NCBI RefSeq assembly: GCF_000315625.1
Contig: NW_005434627.1
Location: forward strand, 17,379-81,378
Direction of reading: 5' to 3'
Source: Guillardia theta CCMP2712
Lineage: Eukaryota; Protista; Cryptophyta
Length of the DNA stretch: 64,000 bases
A program made the position numbers and the translations under genes. How positions within the stretch are numbered: the stretch's first letter is position 1; each line of letters begins with the position of its first letter. Positions 1-39,233 of the stretch are shown piece after piece. The notes under the pieces are model-generated. The model did no database searches, had not been told where the DNA came from, and was given only the letters and a program-made list of their open reading frames with translations.

Positions 1-293
1 AGGAGAGGGAGGGAGCGAGAGAGACAGAGAGACACAAAGAGACAGCGACAGAGAAAGAGAATGACATAAAGAGAAAGATTGCAAGCGAGTGCGAACGAAA
101 GAGAAAAAAAGAGGTGCCTAGAAATGATCGAAGAATAGAAAATACAAGTGACAGAGCGAGGAAAATGAAGAGTGAACAATGAAGAGGATATCAACAGAAC
201 AAACATTCTGTCTGAGAAAGACTTTACTTACTACTTTCCCAATGACTCTCTTTACCTTCTCCAGGCTCCGCCAGGACCGAAGCACCACCAGCA

Positions 294-3200
294 ATGACCA
301 GCAGGCTCCCACCCCTCCTCCTCGTTGCCTGCATCCTCTCCTCCTCATCGGCCGCTGGTCAGTCGCTCAACAGCACAGTGGGAGTGCTGTCGCCGGTGCT
401 GGTCAAGACGTACGGGTCTGTGCCTCTCCTGGCGTTCAAGCAGGTCTCCATGGCCTGCCTCATCGCGCTCTATCACGTCAACACTCGAGACCCTCAGATC
501 GTCGGCCAAGCCGTCGTCGACCGCCTGCCCCAGGTCTGCGACGAGCTGGCCTTGGTGCTGGGCGTGACGTGAGCTGGCAGGGCTTCCGCATCGACGTGAA
601 GTTCAAAGACTCGCAGTTCGACGCAGCAGAGGCGCTCAAGGAAGTCTTGGCGTGGAGAGAGTCGTCGAGCATCGATGCGATAGTGGGCCCGATGACCTCG
701 GACGGGTCGCAGGTCGTGAGCCTTGTGTCTGCTCTGCAGGGGACGCCGGTGACGAGCTTCGGGGCCTCTTCCACGCTTCTCTCGGACAAGCAGACGTACC
801 CGCTCTTCTCGCGAACCAACCCTCTCATCATGCTGAATGCCATGGCGCTCATCGGGGTATGCCTGCGGTTCAAGTGGAAGCAGATCGCGGTCCTGTGTGA
901 GGACACAACCTACGGCAACGGCTTCCTGTCAAATGTGCAGGAACAAGCCTCGTCCAAGGGCGTCGACTTGGTTCAAGTACAGAAGTTTGTGCCAGAAGGC
1001 TCCAAGTCCATTGCTGCAGCCATGAGCTCCCTGCAGAAGAGCCGCGCCAAGATCTTCCTCTACCTCGGCATCGGCGTACCCAACCTGGAGCTGGTGCTGA
1101 CCTATTCCAACAAGGAGGGGCTCTTGCAGGACGGACACGCGTGGGTGGCGGGGGAGATAGGAGTGCCGAGTGCGGTGGTGGCATCCATGCAGCACAAGCA
1201 GCTGGCGGCGCTTCTCAAGGGCTGGATACAGATTCGCGTCGCTCCTTTGTACGGGAAGAAGCGAGACCTCCTTGAGACCGCTTTCAGGACGGTCGACCAG
1301 TCCAAGGTGAACAACTCCATCATCGGCATGAAGCCCGCGGAGTACTCCATGCCCTTGCCCGACTATGCCTCCTTCGCTTACGATGCCGCGTGGGCCACTG
1401 CGCTGGGGCTGGCCAAGACCAACGGCACGGGGGCGGCGCTTGCTCATGCGATCAGAAACTCCTCGTTCCCCGGGGCCTCGGGACTGGTGTCCTTCGACGC
1501 GTCGGGAGATCGAGAGCCCAACGGGATCGTCGTGACTATCGAGAACATCCAGCCGTCCTCAGCGAACGCGTCCGTGATAGAGTCCGTCGTCATCGGTACG
1601 TGGGAGGCCGCCCAGGCCTTCGCCGACGTTAGCGGACTGACTCCGCTGTGGCCTGGCGGAAGAAGCGGCTGGAATCCGCCCAGTGACGGGTCGGGTCAAG
1701 GTCGTGACAAGCTGCTGACGATCGTGCTGGCAGTCAGCGGAGGCTTCCTGGTACTTCTGCTGGCGATCTCGGCGGCGTTCTACCGGCTTTACAAGGCGTC
1801 GCTCAGAAACAGAACGGCAGAGGAGACAGACTTGTCAAACATGATGAGTCGAGTCCGAGAAGCCTTGGGAGTCACCGTGAGCGCAGGGTACATCTTGCCG
1901 AGCGAGAAGTCGTCTTCCATCTTCAGCTGCTACCGGAGGTCGAGGGTCATCGTCATGGACAAGCGAAGCGTAGAGGCTGTGGCCAAGCTTGCGCTGGGCG
2001 ATGACTTTGCCAAGAACGACTTCGAGCGCTTCTACGACTTTGTCAAGTACAGAGCAGATGTCGTTGCGGGCAGGTCGTTCGGAATGATAGCGGACGAGGA
2101 GTCCATGAAGGCGGAGACGGACGCGCTAGACCTCGAGGCGCAGCAGGGGGGGGAGGAGATGACCGAGATGATGCAGCGACTGCACAGCCTCATCCTCATG
2201 GTGTGTCTTCGGATCCTGAGCCCCTCGAGCTCGAGGAGCGAAGAGGAAGGCAGCGACATGCTGTCGGTGGGGTGGAAGGCTCGCATGCTGCAGTCTCGAG
2301 AGAGCCTTGGAGATGTGTTGATGGCAGAGACAACGCACAGCTTGTACGAGGATGAAGCTTTCACCCAGTACCTGAGCGGAGACTTCGAGCGAGCATATGA
2401 ATACTTCACCGGGCGTGTGCTGCGACTCAACGCTTGGCGAGACAACCCGCAGCTCCTGCCTCGCTTGAAGAAGCACATCCAGCGGCTCATGGACAAGCTC
2501 GCCCGCATCAACGACAGAAGGTATGAGTCCATGATGAAGGAAGCAGGAGGAGCTGAGCTCAAGGAGGTCGGGCAAGGCTTCGTCGACGCCTTGTTCTACC
2601 AGGATGACCATCAGGTACTGCCAGGGCGATGGGTTGTAGCCGACAGGCATGACCGTATGACAGGTGCGAGCGATCAGAGTGGAGGAGGAAGACAGGAAGG
2701 AGTCCAGCCTGCACAAGAAACTAGAGACGTGGAGGCGGCTGAGCACGGGGAGCCTGATGCTACGAGAGGATGTCTTCATATCGCAACTCCACAGCCGTGC
2801 GGTGCTGCTCAACGACTCGTTCCATAGCAAGCTAGTCGACGTCCTCAAGGCGCATGCGGCCGAGTGTGAAGTCGAGAGACCCGCTGGAAGAGCCGCAGGC
2901 CAGGGGGCGAAGGGGGTCAGGATCGCCTGCCATTTCGATGACGGAGTGCATCCGATCGAGTTCGTACCTGCTGCGGTGAAGAAGAAGCCGAGGATGGCTG
3001 AGAAGGTGATGGAATATGCGGCGGCGGAGGAGGAGGATGCTGGCTGGCCTTACAGCCGTCGCGTTCTTGACCCGGTAGGAGGACGACAGGTCTCGATTGC
3101 AGTCCCTCAAGTGCGTGCAGGTGCGAGCAAGCGTCATCTGCAACCGCCCGAGCCACATGGCGCAAGTGTATCGCTGGCTGACGTCGCAAGGCAAGACCGG

Positions 3201-6491: not shown

Positions 6492-7203
6492 ATGGAAATA
6501 CATGAAGACGATGACGGGAAAAGAAATCCTTCACCCAGCAACGAGATGGCAGAGGTGAGTCAAGATCGACTCTCGTCTCCTCGCCCTGACTGTAGCGTTA
6601 GATGAAAGGGTTCAACACTATCTTCCCCCGCCGCAAGGCAGGGCAGCAAACGAGAGTAAACAGCAAGCCTGTGGTGCTCAACGAGAAGACTCTCCAGCAG
6701 TTCTTCAGTCTCCCCCTGCATGAAGCTGCTTACAAGCTAGGAATCTCTGCCACCGCCATGAAATCCGCATGCCGGTACGCGAGGAATTGCCTGGATTGCG
6801 AGCACTGACGGGCCACTAGGAAACTTGGCATCAAGAAGTGGCCGTACCGGTCTGTGTATGGAGCCAAGACGCCAGGAGTCGGCAACTCATCTTCCAGCCC
6901 ATCTAACCCATGGAAGAAGTGAGAGAGGGAAGCTGAGCCTCCCGTCCTGACCGTCTGCTCAGGGAAAGTTATGACGCGACCCTGAGCAAGGACGCAGAAC
7001 TTTTGGCGGAGACAGTGATGATGCTCCACGAGGTGAGAAGGGAGGGGGAGGGAGGAGGGGAGGGAGGAGGGGGAAGGGAAGGGGAAGAGTTTGAAGGTTT
7101 CAGTTCGGCTGATTGTGAGCAGAACAAGACGGACGGGAAGGTGAAGGCTGGAGCAGGCGACAGTCACAACCCCGAGATGTCTGTGTCCCGTCTCCTCAAC
7201 TGA
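6492..7203 (+). CDS. RWP-RK domain transcription factor
   Basis: Exons 6492-6554, 6602-6774, 6820-about 6918, then about 6963-7203 give IFPRRKAGQ...LQQFFSLPLHEAAYKLGISATAMKSACRKLGIKKWPYR, a classic RWP-RK motif. The 5' end and a possible extra intron in the GA-rich stretch are uncertain. Confidence 0.88.
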
Positions 7204-7252
7204 TGGCTCAATCTGCGCGAGCTCGTGAGAGGTGTACAGTATGTAATCATGT

Positions 7253-7331
7253 ACAGTGAAGAGAACAGTGAAGAGAACAGTGACAGTGAAGAGAACAGTG
7301 AAGAGAACAGTGAAGAGAACAGTGAAGAGAA
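7253..7331 (+). repeat. 12-nt tandem repeat (ACAGTGAAGAGA, about 6 copies)
   Basis: Directly visible between the stop codons of two convergent genes. Confidence 0.9.
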
Positions 7332-7451
7332 GATAGTCAACAGCAGGATAGTGTTTGTTTGTCCATTTATATGGTTTGGTTTGTAGAAGGGACGTTTCAA
7401 ATTAAAGCTTCATATTATCCTTTCAATTTAAGCAAGCAGCTCTTTCATCTC

Positions 7452-10400
7452 CTAAACAGCCTCGGAGCTTGAAGCTTCTTTGTCATCTTCTCGCTTCTTT
7501 TCCTCCTCATCTGCTGTCTTCTTGCCGTCAGGCTCGTCGTCCCCCTTCCCGACGCGGATGTAGGGAGGAACATTCTTGGGGTGGACCCGCAGGAAGGGGA
7601 TGGTGGAGGGGTCCATGAGAGAGATGAGCGGGAACATGCCGTCATCGAGGATCGTCAGCAGAGCTTTGTCTCGCAGCCACTCCATGCTGATCACCTTCAC
7701 CCCGTCGTTGTTCGCACAATTCTGCACGTGACGCACAAGACGTTCGATGAAGTTGACCATGACGGCGTACAGCCTTCGGATCCCATCCTTGCCAGGCTCC
7801 ATGTGTCCGCCCGTCAGTTCCTGCACAAACCTCTTCATGGGTGCTACTTCAACCTTGATGTCAAGAGAGTCGGGGATGTCGCAGCCGCTCCTTCGCATGC
7901 GATCACCGTAGCAGCTCGACTTGATGGGGATAAGGTGGCGGAAGGTTCGGTAGACATTCTTCTCCGACAGCGACTTGCCGAGCGTCTCTTGTCGCAGAAA
8001 CCCGGCAGCGAAGGAGCGAAGCATGTCCTTGATCAGCTCCTTCGCCTCCGCCTTGAGCTGCAGCTTGAACACAATCTTGACCACCTTGTCCACCAGTCTC
8101 GCATGCGGATTCAAAGGCTTCGAGGATCCTGTGGACTTCCCCTTCCCCTCTCCTCCCTCCTCACCGTCTCCGCCCTCACCGTCTCCACCTTCTCCCTCCG
8201 CACCTCCACCACTTGCTCCTGCGCCCGCGGCTTCAGCATCGCCTCCTCCCTGAGTCACCTCATTCGAGGCCTGGTTGTCAAAGTCCGAGCCCGGCTCGAG
8301 GTTTTCAAAGCTGCCCCCCACCGCTGAGTCGAGATTCTCCTGACCACTGTCCACTTTCCTTCTCTTGTTGTCTGACCACTCCCCAGCGACATGGCTTGAC
8401 TTCATCTCGACCTCCTCGGTGATGAAGAGCATCTTCTTCACGATCCTCTCGTCATACGCGACCGTCACCCCCGCTACTTCCAGCAGAGCCTTGAGCGCGT
8501 CGTCAGTGATGCTGCAGTAGGCTCTAGTCTGGATGTACTCGGCAGGGACAACCTTGACGTCCTCGTTGGTCGCGCAAACCTGCAGGTGGGCAACGAAGCG
8601 GTCGCAGAAGTAGGCGGCAACGGCGTACCATCGCTTCAGCCCCTCCTTGTCGGCGTCAACGGCCCCATCGCTCAATTCGTGAATCTGCCGGCGCATTGGA
8701 GCGATCTCGATCTTGAGATCCAGACCCTCGGGAGGGTCACAGCACGACTTTCTCAGCTTGTCTCCGAAGATGCTGACCTTAGCTGGGACTAGCGTCCGAA
8801 TGGCTCGCAGAACGTTCTTCTCCGAAAGCGACTTCTCGAGAGATTCATGCTTCAGAAAGCCGGACATGAAGGACCTCGTCAACTCTTTCAGCTGCTCCTT
8901 GGCATCCGCTTTCAACTGCAGCTTGAATGTTTGCTTGATCACCTTGTCCACGAGCTTCGAGTGAGGCATCTGAGCCTTCGGCAAGGTCTTGGACGAGGGA
9001 TCGCCCGGCATGCCGTCGTCCAGGCCTCCTTCATCGAGCTTCCCCTCGTCATCCAGCTTCGACTTCCCATCCGCATCCAGGAGGTCATCACCAGCCAACA
9101 TCAACGAGCTTCTGGCTCCCAGCACATCTTTCAACTCCCTCATGTAGTCGCCGTTGGGGTAGTGGTAAAAGAAGACTTCAGCCATGCGGAGCAGCGGTTT
9201 GAAACCTTCGTCCGAGACCAGCGATAGAGCCTTCAGACGCATCCAGTCCAACGTTATGACTTTGACCTCCTCGTTGTTGGCAGTGTGCTGGACATGGGAT
9301 ACCAAACGCTCACAGAAGTGCCCGACTAGAGCATACAGCCTCTTCAAGCCATCCTTGTCGCCGTCGACGGTTCCTTCGCTCAGCTCACTCACTTGCACCT
9401 TCATGGGGGGCGTCTCAAGTTTGAAGGCGAAGCCCTCAGGTTGTTCGCATCCGGCTCGCCTCAGCCTCTCTCCGAAGTTGCTTGCTTTGGCAGGAACCAG
9501 CATCCGGATGGCTCGATACATCGTCCTGTCGGACAGCGACTTCTCAAGGATCTCTAGACGCAAGAATCCGATAATGAAGCACTTGGTGAGCTCTTTGATG
9601 TGCTCCTTGGCATCAGCCTTGAGCTGAAGCTTGAAGATCATTCGGAGCATCCGATCCACCAACCGAGCATGCGGATGTTGCATCTTTGCCCGATTCGCAG
9701 CTCCCTCACCATCGTCACCACTTTGATTGCCATCATCATGATCTGCCATGCTTTCCACTGCCGTGTCAAGTCCCTCGGCAGTCAAGTCCTTAGGCTGGTT
9801 CAAGCCTGATACCATGTCGAGCTTCTGTCGCTTTGGATCATTCCATTCCATGCCGTCCTCGCTCAGCCCGCGCTTCGCCGGGTTCTCTTCAATTCCTGAG
9901 CGGATCGCGTGCGACACTTTCTCGTCATTCTGGATCGCGATGCCTGCGATCTCGAGCAAGGGCTTCAGTCCCTCATCGGCAACGAACGAGAGCGGTTTCG
10001 ATTTTAGCCATTCCAGCCCGATGACCTTGACCTCTTCGTTGTTGGCAGTATGCTGGATGTGATGCACGAGCCTCTCGCTGAAGTGAGCAATCAGAGCATA
10101 CAGCCTCTTCAGTCCCTCTCGATCACCATCGAGCAGGTAGTCGCTGAGCTCCTGCACTTGCCTCCTCATGGGAGCGACTTCGATCTTCAGGTCGAGCCCT
10201 TCGGGGGGCTCGCAGCATCCCTTCCTCAATCTCTCACCAAAGTTGCTTGCCTTGGCAGGGACCATGGTCCTTATAGCACGCAGGATGTTCTTCTCTGAAA
10301 GTGAGCGGCCAAGACTTTCAGATTTCAGGAATCCAATCAAGAAACATTTCACAACTTCCTTGATGAAGTCTTTGGCGTCCGCCTTCAGCTGCAGCTTGAA

Positions 10401-12904
10401 TACCATCTTGAGAACCCTGTCTACCAGTCTCGCATGTGGTGGCTGGATCTTGATCTTGTGAGATGGATCCTCCAATCCTCTCCCATCGTCCATCTTTGGA
10501 ACCCCGTCCTTGTTCTTATCCTTGTTGAGACCATCACTACCGTCGAACCCTTCGTCCTGCTTGTCCATTTCAGAGATCAAGGCTCCACTCTTTCCTGTGA
10601 TGCTCATCTTCGCAGAGCCATCAGGGAATTCTTTCTCGGTGCGAGCGAAGTTCTGGCAGCTGAGCATGAAGGAAGGAGTCATGACCTTGAGCGTCATCTC
10701 CAGCAGAGGTCTGAAACCCTCGTCAATGACGGATTGAAGGCCTGTTCGCCTCAACCAATCTAGAGCGATTACTTTGACCTCCTCGTTATTTGCAATGTGT
10801 TGGATGTGTGATACCAGCCTCTCACTGAAATGAGTCACAAGCGAGTAGAATCTCTTCAGTCCATCTTTATCGGGCTCGATCTCATTGTCACTGAGCTCCT
10901 CCACTTGCCTCTTCATCTGCGAGTTCTCCACCTTGAAATCGAGGCCTTCTGGGGCTTCACAAGCGGAGCGCCGAAGCTTCTCTCCGAATTGGCTTGACTT
11001 TGTTGGGACCAAGTTTCGAATCGTCTTCATAATGTCTTTCTCACCCAAATTTTTACCGACAAGGTCAACTTTTAGCAGGCTGACCATGAATGCCTTCACC
11101 ACGTCCTTCAAGTATTCTTTTGCGTCTGCCTTGAATTGCAATTTGAAAATCTGCTTCACAACCCGGTCCACAACTCTCCCATGAGGAGCTTGCATATTGC
11201 TTGAAGCTTGATTGCCAATCATGCTCGAAACACCATGGCTCGTCTTCTCAGCGCCAACAAGATACAGAAAAGGTTTGAATTCCTCATTTCCAACTGCAGG
11301 CAATCCTTTCTGCTTGAGCCAGGCAAGTTTTACGATGTCGAGGTTATCTTCTTGGGCCTTGGATTGAACGTAGCGTAGAAGCTTGCACAAAAACAAGAAC
11401 ACAAAGTTGAAAATAGTTTCGATGTATATCTTGCCCTGCGATGGAGATTCGGCGATTGCTAAATCTTTGAGAAGTCTTCTGCACGAGCTCAAAAGAAGAA
11501 CGACTTTCAGGTCTTCCCCATCCGATAGAATTGCATATTTTTCCGTGTCGCTTGTCTCCTTGACCTCATTCATGTCAATGTCTGACTGTGCATCGACGTC
11601 TCCATCATCCAACTCCCCTACTTCGAAGTCAGACTCCTTGTATGGCTCGGCTGCGGTTGGAACGATGCTCGGGTTTGACACTATCTTGCCTTCGGCATCA
11701 ACCTGGACAGTGCTTGAGTCGAATGGAAGCCCAAAGGTTTGAAAGAATGTAGTGAGTTCAGAAACGGCGTTTGGTCCTGAAAATGCTGGCCCAATGACTG
11801 AAATCAGGTTATCCTGCATGTTATTGATGTCCGTGATTCTATGCTTCATCAAGTTGAGGAACAAATTGTATACAATACTCTTCAAAGAGTCTGTAGCCTC
11901 GTTGGAAATTTGCGTGGTCAGAATTCTTTTCGCAGTCCTGTCGACAAGTTTCAAGTGCGCGTTTGAACGTAGTTTCCTCGGCAAAGGTGGGATGATCATT
12001 TCGGTAGAGGAGAATTTCTGAGGCACTGGACAGACTGGGTTCACAGGTATAGCAAAAGACTTGGAGGCCTCTTCGATTTCGGGGCTTGCGAGCCACACAA
12101 GTGGTTTAAAGCCCTCGTCGGAAATGTAAAGCAAGGCCTTCCCCCTGACCCATTCCAGAGACAGCACTTTGAGAGACTCATTGTTAGCGCAGCTCTGAAC
12201 ATGTCGGATGAGCCTTTCCTGGAAATGTGCAACCACTGAATAAAGTCTCTTGAGGCCATCTTTGTCTATGTCCGAAACGCCCTCGCAGAGCTCCTGCACC
12301 TGCCTCTTCATTGGCGCCAGTTCCACTCTCACTTCGATACCCTCGGGAGGTTCCCAGCCAGCCTTTCGCAATCGATCGCCGAAGTTGGTGGCCTTAGTAG
12401 GCACAAGATAGCGAATGATCTTGACGAAGTTCTTCTCAGCCAAAGACCTTCCCAGCTGCTCGTGGTGGAGGAAGGCAGCTAAGAAGGACCTTGAGAGATC
12501 TTTCAGGTGCTCCTTAGCATCGGCCTTGATCTGAAGCTTGAAGAGCTGCTTGATGATCTTGTCGAACAGTCTTGCATGCGGCTGCTGTATCTTAAGGGCC
12601 ATAGGGCTCTTCACTCCCAGCCCGATGGTTGCCGCCATGTCTAGCCCCGTTCCTTCTACCTCGTGACCAGGAGGAGGAGGAGCTGCGCTGACTGGTTGGC
12701 ATGCGAGTGAGGACACGTGGCAAGGTCACATCAGAACAGAGGAGCACCTTCCATATCCCCGAAGCCAGCATTGCTGCTCTCGTCTTGAAATGGAGCGCCA
12801 GCATCCGCAGGAGCGTTCACCACCCCTGTTAGGCAAGGAGATGAGCATCAAAGGCATTCAGGAGAATTTCGGAATATACCCATGGCTTGCGAAAAGTCCT
12901 CCAT
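7452..12904 (-). CDS. Large protein (about 1,777 aa) with seven tandem repeats of about 160 aa, each resembling a fused H2B-H2A histone-fold doublet; NLS motifs in linkers
   Basis: Exons 12904-12880 and 12825-12748 (MEDFSQAMGVVNAPADAGAP...) splice in frame to one 5.2-kb exon, 12682-7452. Repeats start at about 12581, 11960, 11186, 10439, 9674, 8966 and 8108 (PHARLVD.V.K..FKLQLKADAKE...). The CDS itself is certain; the histone-fold call comes from manual alignment. Confidence 0.85.
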
Positions 12905-15130
12905 CTTGATCGGTCGATCGCAGAGTTCCAGTCAACAGATCTCCAGATACCAGAGAATTCTAATGATTCGTGCTAGCTCGTTTGAAAACGAACAATCCGG
13001 AAGCCGAAGTCGGAATCAATGTATGGGTGTTGTTTGCCTGCAAGAGAGCAGAAGCCACTAACTACAGAAAGTGTTTCTCATCCTCCTCTCACTATCAGTG
13101 CCTGCGCCCCTTCCTCTGTCCTTCTCTCTGCCTCCTTTCGTCTACTACAATCCTCCCTCTTCCTGCATTGACGATGGGCGCTAATGAGGGATAGGAACGA
13201 GCCTCCTATCTGGCACCCACCCTCGACAAAGTACCCCATTATTGACCATCAATTGTCTGAGCAAAAGAGGGTAGTATTCAACAGTTCAAAGATCAGTACG
13301 GCAAAAAAATAATGAGTAAACTATGTTGATTTCCCGTTCATTTATACCTGACAATAACCATTATATATTTGTAAAACTAATCCCAGTACAATTTTGTAGA
13401 AACCGTCAGTAGTAAGTGAAAATTTCTATTAATTTTTGAATTTTATTAATGTTTACTAATAACAAATATCGAAAAATGATGTTTTTAGATACAAGACATC
13501 TTCTCAGATGACTTTAAAGACAGTACAAGTTTTTGGTACTGCATGGTACAATTTGACACGTCTGTTTGTACTGACTTTCATTCTAATACAAGTTGGCGTG
13601 AATCAATTGAAACAGTGCGCTTCAAATTTCATTTTGAAGCTCCATAATCCCAATAACAGATAGATAGATTGAAATGCGTAGCAAATAGGTTCGCAATCTG
13701 CTTTTTAAAATGACCCACCTCCCACATACATTACATTGGAGGGGGTGAACAACAGGAGGGAATTTGGTAGAAGGGTTTTCGAATGCTTCAGTTTGTAAAG
13801 TTGGTTCACTCTTGAAATAAATTATCTGCTCAATTTCAAATAAAATGAGAAATTCAATAAAAGTTTTGAAAATATAAAATTTCAAATACCGCCCTCGCAA
13901 ACTTGTGCCTCTATATCGAGATGGCCAAGAAAACAAAGAAGAGAGTTCATTTTGGCCTTTAGCAAATAGCACCCCCTAAAAAAAACCAAACGACAGATCT
14001 ATGGGGGAGAAGAAGAGGCGAGGAAGCAACGAGGTGCCTCATCCATCTTGGGGCCCATAGTGCTAATATTTCATAATTCTGGTATGATTAAAATTACATA
14101 GGGTTAGACCTTGGCCTCAACAGATGGGAGGTGCGGCTGGAAGAGGAGCGGAGGAGGAGAAGCGCAAAACATCCGCGACAGTACACATATTTACTCAACT
14201 AAATAAACTATTTTACCGGGCAATGTCCGGCATTTCTCCTGAGGCGGACCGGAGGACGCTGAGGCGGACCGGTTTCTTCTAGTTTCAAATCTCGTACACC
14301 CACCCACCCTTGGTTAAGCCGACTTCTCAACAAAGACCCCCGGAGAGGACTCAACTTGTGAATACTACCCCTCCATATGATATTTTTCTTTGGGAATATT
14401 AAGGGGTGATAGTGATGACTACCCCTACCATGAATCGTTGTAGTAGCCCTTTGCTGCTTACCACCCTTGCCCATCCATGCCCCAGCCGCCATGCAGCCCC
14501 TGGGCTTGAGCAGCGTTCCTACATGCCCCTTCTCATCCGTCTCCTCTTCTCTCATGACCACTTACCCTTCCATCATCTCCGCTTCCCCCTCCTTCCTGCT
14601 CCTTCTCTTGTCCTCCTTGTCCTCCTTGTCCTCCTTGTCGTTTCTTAGTGGAGTACCAGGCTGGTTCCTTTTTTTCACTCTGCGCCCTCATGGAGTTGCG
14701 ACGGGCTCGTCGCTCGCTCTAGTCTTTCATTCCATGCCGATTCATGTGCTGCTGTCCTTCAATCCCTTGAGTTTCCATTTTGTATGCGAACGTGAGAGAA
14801 TATGAATTTGACTTGCACCTTGCGAAACATCCTTTTTGAAGTGTTGAAAGAGTAACTTTTCTCTCATTCTTGTGTTGCTGAGAGTAATGGGGCATTGTCT
14901 CACTCCCTTCCTTTTCATCGCCTGATGTTGTTCTCCTCCAGGTTCAGACTGCATTCAGTTGGTTCAGACTGGTCGACTCGGCTCATGGTCCCGAGAAAGC
15001 GAAGCCTTAGCGCAACTTTGGTGACAACAACAGTCAAGTACCTGATCGCACACCACTAGCACGTGCGGAAGACTTTTCCCTCGCTACTGGCCCAAGTGTT
15101 GTGGAAGAGTAGAGGAATTGGGTGGGCTCG

Positions 15131-16196: not shown

Positions 16197-19100
16197 TCAT
16201 TCATCCGATTTGATGATCCCCTGTCGGAAGGTCCAGTTGAAGCAATCTTTCTCTACCAGCTCATTCTGCTTGATCTGCAAGATATTCCTGAAGTTCTCTT
16301 CTCCGATGACAATCTGCACAGAGTTCAGCATAGCCTTGATGCCGGGGCATCGACGAGGGATGGAGTCAAGGTGAGAACAGGAACAAGAGACTAACCCCGA
16401 GCTTGTGGAATAGTGCTGCGCGCAGTAGCTGCTGTGTGACTTGATCCTTGTCGATGTCGAGCACGTCTCTCCATACGTCTCGTTCGCCCTTGCTGGCCCC
16501 AGATCCCTTCCTCGCCTTCCAACTCTCCTTGGTCCCCTCCTCCTTTGCTCCCTCGCGCGCACCGCCTTCATGCCCCCCCTCCTTGTCCCACCTGCGCGCC
16601 TTTCGCTGCTCGGACTCGCCGGGAGAGGCTCGTTTTGACCTGCTCCTCAACGGTGCTACCTGGTCTCGAAGAATGACCCAGCTGTTGGTCGGCCCGTAGT
16701 CCTCCACCTTCACCTCGCAAGAGCTGGACCCGTGCTGGAACGAGACGACGGCTCGATCCTCTGCTATTTCCCTGAGCTGCCCCTCCTTCCACCGCTTCTC
16801 CTCTTCCACCCACACCGCCACTCGCCTTCCTGCAAGCCCCTGATCCTTCCAGTTGCTGGGAAGCTCTTCAGCTTCGCCGTCAAACACTCGGGGGTCACGC
16901 TGGTCGTGCGAGGACCGGAGTTTGAAAGAGACAGGCTGAAGAGAGTAGTGAGGGGTTCGGATGGGTGGGTTGGCGGAAAAAGGAAAAAGGGGGCGGAAGA
17001 AAATAGAAGGGGAGGTAGAAAGACAAGGATGGACTAGACTGAGAATCAAAAGAAGATCTGGCAGAAGAAGGGGGTGGGGAGAAGGGACGGAGGAAGGGAG
17101 GCAGGAGAGAAAGAGGAGGAGGGAGGAAGGGAGGGAGGAGAGAAAGAGGAGGAGGGAGGAAGGGAGTGAGGGAGGAAGGGGAGAAAGAAGAGGAGGAACG
17201 ATATCTCAGAACTCACGTTGGCTCTCCTTGAGCTTCCTTGCTGCACCTCAGCATCGTGCTTCTCCTTGAGGATCACTTCAAGACATCTGACATCCAAGAC
17301 GGTCAGAGAGGATTTCTTGCTGAGTATCCGAGGCACCTCCGGAAGTCGTTCCTATCGGAGAAAAATTTTCGCTTCTCCTTCGGAATCTGGGCAGGTTGAA
17401 ATGAGGCAGAGCATGAACGGCGATCATCCTTCCTCCTCTACCTTCCTCTGCCTCTCCCGCTCCGCCTTTTCCATCAAATCGTTCGGAACTCCAAAGAGGA
17501 CGAAAGAGTTTCTCGGATCTGTGGTGACATCTTGACGTCTGACGACGTGGGGTGGTGGACAACGCGATACCTTCATGCAAAACTGTCCATCCAAGGCGGT
17601 TGAGCACGTCTTGTTTGTAGATTTTCCATGCCTGTTGCCAATACAATCAACATGACCATCATCATGATCTCCATCTCGATCTCGATAATCTCGATCTCGA
17701 TCATCATCATGATCACTATATCATCATCACCACCACCACCACCACCACCATCATCACCATCATCATTTCCAAATCCTCCATTGCCTCCCTTTCTTACCAG
17801 GTATCGGCGACTCACAGCGGCTTCGTGGTCGACGATTCTCACTAACAGTTTTCGCAACCCTTTATCAACAGCTGCCTCGCCATCTCAAACTCTTGGCAAC
17901 TTGATCACTGCTTCACCTGAGACATTGAACATGTGGTTCAAACTCGAAGGGATCCTCTTTGGTAGCTTCCTGAACGTTTCCGAGACATCAAGGGAGCGAA
18001 GAGAGCACTCATGGGGGCCTCACACGCTGCTTTGTGACACATTGTGCATCTTAACCAGGGCCTGCACAACCTGCACAAAGGCATCAACTAGGAAGTTGCA
18101 AGTCAGACATGTCAAGTACTTGGTCGTTCTTCAGCATCGAGCTGTTGCTGAGCTGATTCTTCCTGTCCGAGGCAGCCTGACTACCTTGAGGTTGACTCGG
18201 CCGCGATGACGATGATTGACCGGCTGTGCTGTCATCACTCTTACCCCTTGCACGTCAAGAGTCAGTCTTCGCACAAACGACCGACACATTCACCTCTTCC
18301 CGCTGTTCTGCTCATTCCGGTTGCCGGCAGGCCGGTTTCGATTCACCGACCCCGGTTTCACAAACGCACTGTGTCCTTGGTTTGATTTGGCGTGTTCATC
18401 TCCGCCTGAGATACAAGGCAAAGATCAAGACATAGGACAATACAAACACACAAACACTCAACCTTCGAACATCTCTTGACAGTTGGATAGGATCTTCGCT
18501 ATCTCCAACTTCTTCTTCGACAGGTTCTTCCCGTCGTCCTTGGAAGAGCCAGCAGCACCAGCAGCAATGCACTTGGGACAGAACCAATCTCCCTCAGGCA
18601 GCTCTTTGATTTTGAGGCACCTGATGTGCCATCCCTTCCCGCAACCTGTATCCTTGCCGCCACAAAGGACAATGTCGTTGTCCTCGGAGCAGTCGAACCC
18701 CTTGCACATCTCGCACCCGATCTCATCCAAGTTTGATGACGAGCCCTCACTATCACTGGAAGGGTACTCCCCCTTGATGTCTTTCAGCGTCTCTTGGGCC
18801 GCGTCCATGTTCCGAGGGTTGATCCGCTTCGTGCGGATGAGATGGTCAAGGAAATCAATGCAGTCTTCGTTGTTGTCCATCAGTGTGTAGATGTTCGAGA
18901 AAGCTGTATACTCGTCCTCCGACACTACTGCGTTCTGGAATTTCAAACCGTCCCTGTACTGCACTGTGGCGTACTGACTGACTAGCTTCAGATGCACCGA
19001 GTTGTCCGTCGCAGTGTTTCGAATCCATCCAACCCACCAGCCCTTGAACACTCCATTCCCCCGCCATTCTCCTACCCACCAAGTGTCTTCGAGCTTCCGA

Positions 19101-21829: not shown

Positions 21830-22420
21830 ATGTCCCTCCCTGCCATGCCCAGCTCTGACAATGACCCCCCTGATGCCTCCATCCGCGTCTACCCTCGCCG
21901 TCGACACAGCGTCCAGCGGCCCATGTCGGCAGTGGAAGTGACGCGTAGCGACCTTGAGAGTCTGTTTCATGTCAAGCAGGAGCAAGCAGCCGCCTCGCTG
22001 GTGAGGGAGACACGACGACAAGGAGGAGGCTGGAGGGTGTCACTGACTTGTATGCAGGGCTTGTCGCTGACGGCCTTCAGAGGCGCCTGCCGCCGTCTCG
22101 GGATCACGCGCTGGCCTTACAACAAGGGGAAAGAAGCTTCTTCGCTACGGAGGATAGGACGGGAAGAAGGCAGCGGCAGCAACAGTGACGAGGGCGAGGG
22201 CGAGAGCGAGGGCGAGGGCGAGGAGGGGACAGGAGCTGCTCGAGGCAGCAGGGGTCACGAAGGGCTTTCGCGCGCGTTCATCGAGTGGTTCCTGTCAAGA
22301 CCGAACGAGATGGAGGAGGACTGCTGGGAGAGCCTGAGCTTCCAGCGTGGTAGCCGTGGGCTCTCTCAGCTTGTAACCTCGACTGAGCCTCAGATGTACA
22401 GAGGTGGGACCGTGAGATAA
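21830..22420 (+). CDS. RWP-RK domain protein (copy A)
   Basis: Removing an in-frame 57-nt GT-AG intron (22001-22057) gives LESLFHVKQEQAAASLGLSLTAFRGACRRLGITRWPYNK. Confidence 0.88.
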   Translation: MSLPAMPSSDNDPPDASIRVYPRRRHSVQRPMSAVEVTRSDLESLFHVKQEQAAASLVRETRRQGGGWRVSLTCMQGLSLTAFRGACRRLGITRWPYNKGKEASSLRRIGREEGSGSNSDEGEGESEGEGEEGTGAARGSRGHEGLSRAFIEWFLSRPNEMEEDCWESLSFQRGSRGLSQLVTSTEPQMYRGGTVR

Positions 22421-23191: not shown

Positions 23192-23921
23192 TCAAAGGTC
23201 CTCTACAAGTAAGCTGAGAGCTGAGTTGAGCTGACTGCCTCTTGAGCGGTCCTCAGTCGAGGTTACAAGCTGAGAGAGCCCACGGCTACCACGCTGGAAG
23301 CTCAGGCTCTCCCAGCAGNNNNNNNNNNNNNNNNNNNNNNNNNNNNNNNNNNNNNNNNNNNNNNNNNNNNNNNNNNNNNNNNNNNNNNNNNNNNNNNNNN
23401 NNNNNNNNNNNNNNNNNNTCCATCTCGTTCGGTCTTGACAGGAACCACTCGATGAACGCGCGCGAAAGCCCTACCCTGACCCGAGAGGCCCGAGCAGCCC
23501 CGGTCCCCTCCTCGCCCTCGCCCTCGCCCTCGCCCTCGCCCTCGCCCTCGCCCTCGCCCTCGTCACTGTTGCTGCCGCTGCCTTCTTCCCGTCCTATCCT
23601 CCGTAGCGAAGAAGCTTCTTTCCCCTTGTTGTAAGGCCAGCGCGTGATCCCGAGACGGCGGCAGGCGCCTCTGAAGGCCGTCAGCGACAAGCCCTGCATA
23701 CAAGTCAGTGACACCCTCCAGCCTCCTCCTTGTCGTCGTGTCTCCCTCACCAGCGAGGCGGCTGCTTGCTCCTGCTTGACATGAAACAGACTCTCAAGGT
23801 CGCTACGCGTCACTTCCACTGCCGACATGGGCCGCTGGACGCTGTGTCGACGGCGAGGGTAGACGCGGATGGAGGCATCAGGGGGGTCACTGTCAGAGCT
23901 GGGCATGGCAGGGAGGGACAT
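23192..23921 (-). CDS. RWP-RK domain protein (copy B, inverted paralog of copy A; spans an assembly gap)
   Basis: Nearly identical to 21830-22387, including the intron. Interrupted by an N-run (23319-23418). If frame is preserved across the gap it ends ..STEDRSRGSQLNSALSLLVEDL* at 23192. Confidence 0.75.
23319..23418. other. Assembly gap (N-run)
   Basis: Run of 100 N. Confidence 0.99.
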
Positions 23922-24073
23922 GCAGGAGCAGGTGCGTGCGTGGAACGGGGCACCAGCGCTTATATGGGGTTGACCACTAGCGACCTTTTCAAGTCGGTCA
24001 CGTTGCACCATGGCCTGTATTATTACTCATCGTACTGGTACTAATAACCCGGCGGGCCGCATTGTCGCCAGAA

Positions 24074-38622: not shown

Positions 38623-39233
38623 TTAAGCACGCTCGCCACGGATGCGGCGTGCAAGCTGAATGTCCTTGGGCATGATAGTGACACGCTTGGCGTGGATAGC
38701 GCAGAGGTTGGTGTCCTCGAAGAGCGAAGTGAGGTAGGCCTCAGATGCCTCCTGGAGCGCCATGATGGCATGCGACTGGAAGCGAAGATCTGTTTTGAAA
38801 TCTTGGGCGACCTCGCGGACAAGACGCTGGAAAGGCAACTTCCTGAAATCCAAAAACATCAAGAAATGTAAATTTACGAAAAATATCAAGATATACCTGA
38901 TGAGCAATTCGGTAGACTTCTGGTATCTACGAATCTCACGGAGGGCAACAGTTCCTGGCCTGCATTACATATTACTCACTGCTGCGGCTGGCACAAAACA
39001 AACCATCACCTGAAGCGATGGGGCTTCTTGACACCACCGGTGGATGGTGCAGACTTGCGCGCAGCCTTGGAAGCAAGCTGCTTGCGGGGGGCCTGACGCA
39101 AACACCATCAGAAACATGAAAGCAAACTAAGCTCACAACAGCAGAATTTCTACAACAATCATATATCTCTAGGACAACTGAAACTCACCTTGCCACCTGT
39201 GGACTTGCGGGCTGTCTGCTTGGTACGGGCCAT
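38623..39233 (-). CDS. H3: Histone H3 (three introns; H3.3-like residues)
   Basis: Spliced sequence [136 protein letters not shown]. Confidence 0.98.

Follow-up and report, generated by a model that had tools for sequence, protein, structure and literature searches.

A spliced Guillardia theta gene encodes seven tandem repeats predicted to adopt a divergent double histone fold

The window analysed here is a 64,000-nucleotide stretch of the genome of the cryptophyte Guillardia theta CCMP2712 (contig NW_005434627.1, positions 17,379 to 81,378 of the forward strand), and all coordinates below are positions within it. Its minus strand carries at 7452-12904 one gene of three exons, whose product of 1780 amino acids (aa) contains seven colinear repeats, R1 to R7. 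Each repeat is predicted to be an intramolecular pseudodimer of two histone folds, the first H2B/NF-YB-like with an αC helix and the second H2A/NF-YC-like. A preliminary description of this DNA had proposed seven fused H2B-H2A doublets from alignment by eye; the assignment of a double histone fold in the order H2B-then-H2A now follows from a structural model of R4 together with its matches in Foldseek, VIA, BFVD and the ESM Atlas. As to its role, the balance tilts slightly towards a nuclear, multivalent binder of chromatin or DNA.

R4 (residues 785-951; 9942-10442, minus strand) was modelled with AlphaFold2 without templates, from an alignment of 19 sequences made up of the seven repeats and their homologues. 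The model has a predicted local distance difference test score (pLDDT) of 94.8 and a predicted template modelling score (pTM) of 0.90, with pLDDT between 93.5 and 94.8 across five models. It consists of two consecutive helix-strand-helix-strand-helix motifs: the helices of the first fold span 11-23, 30-48(-53) and 59-69, followed by αC at 76-84, and those of the second span 98-108, 117-144 and 152-157, followed by a short αC at 169-174, after which the chain passes into the linker. Short strands in the loops form bridges at L1/L2' and L2/L1' (the prime denoting the second fold), as in real histone pairs, and α2 of the first fold is some 10 residues shorter than in H2B.

The test set beforehand, namely AlphaFold and Foldseek on one repeat, returned two histone folds in a handshake that superpose on H2B-H2A, and the structure matches of R4 were double histone folds rather than some non-histone fold. 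All of the best 50 Foldseek matches in the PDB were histone doublets (single-chain H2B-H2A(.Z), the SOS histone domain, HMk and Melbournevirus), among them 4nft_A with E 5.8e-4 and a template modelling (TM) score of 0.64, and SOS 1q9c with TM 0.66-0.73 and a root-mean-square deviation (rmsd) of 3.2-3.6. An exhaustive VIA search, independent of Foldseek, likewise placed double histone folds in all ten of the best positions, with Z falling from 12.6 to 5.2 and unrelated folds appearing from Z 4.9 down. The SOS domain scored 12.6 (rmsd 3.5 over 152 residues), Melbournevirus 11.7 and 11.2, fused H2A-H2B 11.3, HMk (1f1e) 10.5, Spt3 8.9, 8.0 and 7.0, and the bacterial double histone folds (1wwi, 1r4v) 8.3 and 5.2. 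The whole-domain superpositions on SOS, HMk, fused H2A-H2B and the viral doublets cover 144-167 residues at Z 10.5-12.6 and TM 0.55-0.73. The order of the two folds, as first proposed, is upheld at fold level by the VIA alignments of the halves, in which residues 5-88 of the model are covered by single H2B chains and 90-179 by chain B from the crystal structure of Dpb4-Dpb3, itself an H2A/H2B-like pair, and by the ranking in BFVD, where viral H2B-H2A doublets outscore H4-H3 doublets (E 9e-4 to 4e-3, identity 11-18%). The ESM Atlas search of the same model returned plant H2B.7-like/Histone_ABTB, SOS and archaeal doublet clusters.

That there are seven tandem copies, as the preliminary description had it, was confirmed by blastp, by alignment and by a hidden Markov model (HMM). 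Six of the repeats are 166-167 aa long and 48-62% identical to R4, and the alignment of all seven has a mean column identity of 47%. With R4 as query against its own protein, blastp recovered five others (E 6e-59 to 2e-75) and a seventh in its second half only (E 3e-9). The HMM built from the six canonical copies detects R2 with both halves colinear at E 3e-10 (Z=1e6), the first half alone reaching only 14.3 bits. All repeats lie on the minus strand and open with a conserved K-x-Q-x-P-H motif: R1 (residues 71-236; 12087-12584; net charge +7), R3 (536-702; 10689-11189), R5 (1040-1206; 9177-9677), R6 (1276-1442; 8469-8969) and R7 (1562-1727; 7614-8111) are assigned as double histone folds by homology, and R2 (279-523; 11226-11960) as a divergent one. 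R2 reaches 245 aa through an acidic insert, about 75 aa long, that separates its halves, and it has lost most of the basic residues conserved in the other repeats. The doublet cores have a net charge of +2 to +8 and an isoelectric point (pI) of 8.5-9.6, except for R2 at -12.

Between the repeats lie disordered linkers of 12-119 aa, most of them acidic. The description of these as acidic or Gly-rich holds for the four long ones (pI 4.3-5.3) and for the Gly-rich linker ahead of R7 respectively, but not for the two short linkers flanking R2, which are not acidic. The stretch ahead of R1 has a pI of 4.05. Neither basic N-terminal tails nor an H2A C-terminal docking extension is present, and the flanks of the doublets are mostly acidic linkers (pI 4.05-5.3). 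Two linkers carry a short basic motif, DPKRQKLD at 9816-9839 and DNKRRKVD at 8349-8372 (both minus strand); the first resembles a classical monopartite nuclear localisation signal (NLS) and is identical in the related cryptophyte Hanusia phi inside a less conserved linker, and the second is NLS-like, its KRRKVD core being kept in Hanusia. The two share a wider context, EW(N/S)(D/E)xKR(Q/R)K(L/V)D (W-x-D/E-x-KRxK-x-D), which is also kept in Hanusia and suggests either common ancestry of the R4-plus-linker and R6-plus-linker units or a functional site of nuclear import or binding.

The gene is real, expressed and spliced, given that intron-free transcript contigs cover it and that the joined exons encode the 1780-aa protein in frame. 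An uninterrupted open frame of 1754 codons runs on the minus strand from 12716 to 7452. Public runs were mapped on 7300-13100, and contigs were obtained from three runs (X1, X2 and X7) of three studies; that they are RNA is a guess, though the joined form, lacking two canonical introns, is what RNA gives. A single contig of 5770 nt from X1 spans the gene, from 7302 to past 13100, with both introns removed, and the X2 and X7 contigs agree. The transcribed region on the minus strand accordingly covers 7302-13100, with its 5' end about 80 nt past 13100, and further reads at the 3' end come from a 2026 RNA-seq run. Exon 1 (12879-12904) opens with an ATG at 12904 and is followed by intron 1 (12825-12878, 54 nt), exon 2 (12748-12824), intron 2 (12692-12747, 56 nt) and exon 3 (7452-12691). 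Both introns are GT..AG on the minus strand and absent from all three sets of contigs, and joining 12904-12879, 12824-12748 and 12691-7452 restores the reading frame. The ATG at 12904 is a candidate start, as the Hanusia gene model begins at a later Met that corresponds to full-length residue 53. The extent of the gene and its 5.2-kb uninterrupted exon, both described earlier from the letters alone, stand: the last exon measures 5240 nt with the stop codon and holds all seven repeats, and lack of expression, which would have told against the gene, is not what the contigs show. Just past the 3' UTR (untranslated region), at ~7250-7350 on the minus strand, is a tandem 12-nt unit (TTCTCTTCACTG and variants) in about 8 copies, beginning near the contig end at 7302. 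Targeting to the nucleomorph or plastid was rejected by eye, the N-terminus being acidic and without a hydrophobic signal peptide.

The nuclear DNA- or chromatin-binding role is favoured because of four features: basic columns at the expected contact positions, a core charge near that of histones, the KRQK/KRRK linker motifs and a homologue joined to an HMG-type box. The columns that are basic throughout the family lie in L1 and at the start of α2 (K25, K29, K33), at the start of α1' (R102, R103), in L1' (K117) and L2' (K148) and in αC, which is where histone-fold pairs touch DNA. The net charge of the cores (+2 to +8) compares with +10 for the tail-less H2B plus H2A cores of the same genome. 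On this reading the mildly basic doublets would each bind some 30 bp of DNA through their paired-loop (L1/L2) and α1-α1 surfaces, in the manner of an H2A-H2B or NF-YB/NF-YC dimer, as modules without histone tails or the H2A docking domain. The acidic linkers may space the modules, temper their DNA binding or bind basic partners, and R2, lacking the basic residues, would probably be a structural or protein-binding unit. A more ambitious arrangement, in which the seven pseudodimers stack on DNA as a superhelical ramp and form a single-chain, H3/H4-free, hypernucleosome-like particle wrapping about 200 bp, is improbable.

Several observations weigh against the binding of DNA or chromatin, or against the fold on which it depends. 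The whole 1780-aa protein has a net charge of -25, and conserved acidic residues adjoin the basic ones (among them D116, E145 and an NNEE stretch at the position of H2A KKTR), so that several contact positions of H2A are occupied by acidic residues. The SOS H domain, which the model resembles most, is not a nucleic-acid binder (PMC13088155), and nuclear localisation is suggested by short motifs only. No Histone3 (RF00032) 3' stem-loop was found in 6800-7500 at E<=1, and the gene is therefore not regulated like a replication-dependent histone. A confident model exists for R4 only, the other six repeats being assigned by homology, and a three-repeat model (R1-R3) was unusable, with pLDDT 38.9 and pTM 0.26. 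Finally, since no sequence method gave a significant result, the fold call rests on one predicted model from 19 sequences. Pfam returned nothing significant for the whole protein and a best E of 0.14 among the seven repeats; hmmsearch of the PDB with repeat, family and half profiles stayed below threshold throughout (E>=0.005, and E 0.17 for one of the profiles); and hhalign against the H2A, H2B, H3 and H4 of the same genome gave only non-specific pairings at E>=0.04, its NC2alpha-like protein likewise staying below threshold.

Given this last set of results, AlphaFold might be suspected of having over-read a shallow alignment of what is really another all-helical domain, the more so as helical models may reach middling Z by chance, as only 19 sequences went into the model and as no significant sequence match to histones was found. 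However, this is very improbable for four reasons: first, five template-free models agree with high pLDDT; second, only double histone folds are matched, over 144-167 residues, and the scores fall abruptly where unrelated folds begin; third, the strand bridges L1/L2' and L2/L1' are those of real histone pairs; and fourth, independent weak sequence matches are to histone-fold proteins, each in the correct half. For the first half, the sub-threshold PDB matches on α1-L1-α2 are NF-YB2/B3 (E 0.13-1) and ORP1, and for the second half the sole near-significant one is Melbournevirus miniH2B-H2A (E 0.005); CBFD_NFYB_HMF was also found below threshold on the second half of two homologues (E 0.045 and 0.17). 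The weak matches as a whole are thus enriched for histone-fold proteins, each in its expected half. With hhalign the H2B of the same genome gave E 0.042 and H2A no match; the H2B pairing is in register with the fold, carries a 10-residue deletion in α2 and includes a good L2-α3 match (SLSEKNILRAIRTMVP vs TLSAREIQTAVRLILP). The matches to H2B and H2A first noted by eye are not statistically significant alone, though those in the first half are in register both with the predicted helices and with this pairing. Histone_ABTB (PF26281), TFIID-18kDa (PF02269) and DUF1931 gave nothing at E<=10 in the protein or any repeat, a PF00125 search of the whole genome misses the gene, and a language-model atlas look-up scored 0.77 and was uninformative.

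If the fold is accepted, the double histone folds may instead have been re-used as interaction modules, as in SOS, Spt3 and the TAFs, so that the protein would be a protein-protein scaffold, made multivalent towards a protein partner by its seven copies, for which contact with DNA is unneeded. This is a serious rival, although the less probable one: the SOS H domain, which the model matches best, has lost the electrostatics required for nucleic-acid binding (PMC13088155), Spt3 is also among the matches (Z 8.9), the KKTR of H2A L2 is here EEVK, L1' is acidic and the protein as a whole is negatively charged. Against it, the doublet cores are still basic, near the tail-less H2B plus H2A cores, conserved basic residues sit exactly at the canonical DNA-contact loops, and the homologue P0002 is fused to an HMG/YABBY DNA-binding box.

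Mimicry of the H2A-H2B dimer is unlikely. Here the doublets would engage H3-H4 or factors that bind H2A-H2B, such as chaperones and remodellers, as a multivalent partner, sink or decoy; in a variant, the acidic, aromatic-containing linkers would themselves chaperone basic histones. The order and shape of the folds may fit the H2B-H2A(.Z) dimers of chaperone complexes, and the linkers may resemble acidic chaperone stretches. However, there is neither an H2A docking domain nor any sequence similarity to the acidic patch, and α2 of the first fold, a helix that helps to build the four-helix bundle with H4, falls short of that of H2B by some 10 residues.

A profile search of 1.84 billion protein representatives found 16 proteins only, and in the Guillardia genome itself (87 Mb, 669 contigs) a profile search found no match besides the gene described here. 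The HMM from the Guillardia repeats alone detects the relatives P0002, P0004 and P0013 at 7e-46, 1e-35 and 2e-15. The ortholog in Hanusia phi has 1728 aa and seven repeats; identity to the Guillardia protein is 88-97% in the doublets (95.8% for R1), mostly 66-88% in the linkers (the 12-residue L3 being identical) and 56-60% at the two ends, so that the doublets are more strongly conserved than most linkers. In the tree every repeat pairs with its own Hanusia counterpart, and the seven-copy array is therefore older than the split between the two genera, with each position kept since.

This conservation bears on a further explanation, that the chain is a polyprotein precursor whose linkers are cleaved to free seven doublets, a dosage device like polyubiquitin or algal polyproteins. 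Seven similar units in one frame, each opening with K-x-Q-x-P-H, would suit such a precursor. Nevertheless, it is hardly credible: the linkers vary in length (12-119 aa) and sequence and share no cleavage motif, and the units have diverged to 48-62% identity and are individually conserved in Hanusia, a pattern that points to a role specific to each position and not to dosage.

The remaining relatives, on metagenomic eukaryotic contigs that bear one doublet each, are exon fragments or proteins with a single doublet. In P0002 an N-terminal YABBY/HMG-box domain (residues 33-94, E 2.6e-12) is joined to a single doublet; its low-complexity C-terminus (CVCV/YMYV) is probably a gene-calling artefact. 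P0004 and P0013 have Lys-rich, NLS-like flanks, a further hint of chromatin or DNA binding. In one metagenomic relative (L030:546-1356) the single doublet lies in three exon-like pieces (546-788, 1004-1096 and 1216-1356), whereas the seven doublets of the Guillardia gene contain no intron. Pattern scans of IMG/VR and of metagenomes found no relative, and identity to viral doublets, at 11-18%, is no higher than to cellular ones. A possible viral origin had been raised at the outset, and nothing was found that speaks for it: the IMG/VR scan was blank, the gene has spliceosomal introns, and its neighbours are ordinary eukaryotic genes without a viral hallmark. The long intron-less exon, read earlier as a sign of transfer or retroposition, would arise just as readily if a unit without introns had been duplicated within the gene. 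The neighbours include open reading frames (ORFs) for an ANF_receptor ligand-binding domain (179-2824, plus strand), a PHD finger (18461-19051, minus strand) and two RWP-RK domains on opposite strands (21830-22417, plus; 23289-24011, minus).

Comparison with known systems brings out what is shared and what is not. The SOS1 H domain (1q9c, 3ksy) resembles each repeat in having an H2B-like fold ahead of an H2A-like one in a single chain, the two paired as a pseudodimer; it matches the model best and, like the repeats, is of very low identity to real histones. Unlike the Guillardia protein it occurs as one copy N-terminal to DH-PH-RasGEF, in animals and Capsaspora, and is cytosolic without binding nucleic acids; the Guillardia protein has seven copies and no other Pfam domain (no RhoGEF, PH or RasGEF domain was found by Pfam in the 1754-aa frame), is 12% identical to 1q9c and keeps the basic loop residues. 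The doublets of Nucleocytoviricota (Melbournevirus/Marseillevirus; 7n8n, 9cvt) also place H2B before H2A in one polypeptide (Z 11.2-11.7), but they are recognisable Histone domains in Pfam, form nucleosome-like particles with H4-H3 doublets, and belong to a set of viral histone repeats that includes triplets and reaches quadruplets, with at most four folds per chain (PMC11222145). In contrast, the Guillardia protein is the product of a spliced cellular gene, and its 14 folds are all of H2B-H2A type, with no H3/H4-like unit.

The second class of comparison is with the paired subunits NF-YB/NF-YC, NC2 and Dpb4/Dpb3 (POLE3/POLE4). The first half shares the 'DAKE..E.V..F' pattern of NF-YB2/B3 in register, the second half fits the Dpb4-Dpb3 chain, and the cores are likewise mildly basic and without histone tails. 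The second half also has a P-x-x-R motif that opens α1', which we take to be a trait of H2A-class folds. However, those proteins are two separate small subunits, whereas in Guillardia the folds are fused and repeated sevenfold, and the sequence matches are sub-threshold. HMk, Spt3/SUPT3H and the bacterial double histone folds share the pseudodimer architecture, but for these and for the ABTB2-type proteins no sequence relationship was found, so that the likeness is structural only.

Two ORFs with an H3 fold were also seen. One, at 38623-38907 on the minus strand and 26 kb from the gene described here, encodes the C-terminal two thirds of an H3 fold (...ARRIRGERA; PF00125 51-122, E 3.7e-31) preceded by non-histone sequence, and probably represents the final exon of a gene for H3 or an H3 variant. 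The other lies elsewhere in the genome, outside the window (L010:349-1893, plus strand; G000:C114), and is unrelated to the seven-doublet protein: this 515-aa ORF encodes an H3 variant whose complete H3 fold (PF00125, E 1.5e-42) comes after a very long N-terminal extension of about 380 non-histone residues.

The double-histone-fold architecture is known, occurring as a single domain in SOS, Spt3, HMk and bacterial proteins, and a 2026 review lists its families as HMk-type, SOS, ABTB2, SPT3, bacterial and HSIH (PMC13088155); the Guillardia sequence family is new. The eukaryotic multiplets of a 2026 survey are near-identical to canonical H3, H4 and H2A and come from animal gene models (PMC13520046), whereas the Guillardia sequences have diverged strongly and their array is borne out by a spliced transcript of full length. 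Neither cryptophytes nor a Guillardia doublet family is mentioned in PMC13088155, PMC13520046 or PMC11222145, nor do these sources report an earlier case of a sevenfold array, with its 14 histone folds, in a cellular gene that is expressed, in keeping with the initial remark, consistent with the two 2026 surveys, that no cellular protein with seven doublets was known. What sets the protein apart is the combination of a divergent family that is invisible to Pfam, a sevenfold array in one cellular polypeptide with a full-length spliced transcript, and an architecture kept in a second genus. It widens the design space of histone-fold proteins and offers a natural test of tethered histone-like dimers, a question raised by the work on viral histone repeats, while for biochemistry the family supplies a tractable series of a lone doublet, a doublet joined to an HMG box, and the array of seven. 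Should the array wrap or bridge DNA, it would represent a new type of architectural protein for eukaryotic chromatin; and if the pseudodimers were to stack as a ramp, eukaryotic cells would possess a counterpart of the archaeal histone polymers and the viral histone quadruplets, and their nuclei a second way of wrapping DNA, one that involves no nucleosome.

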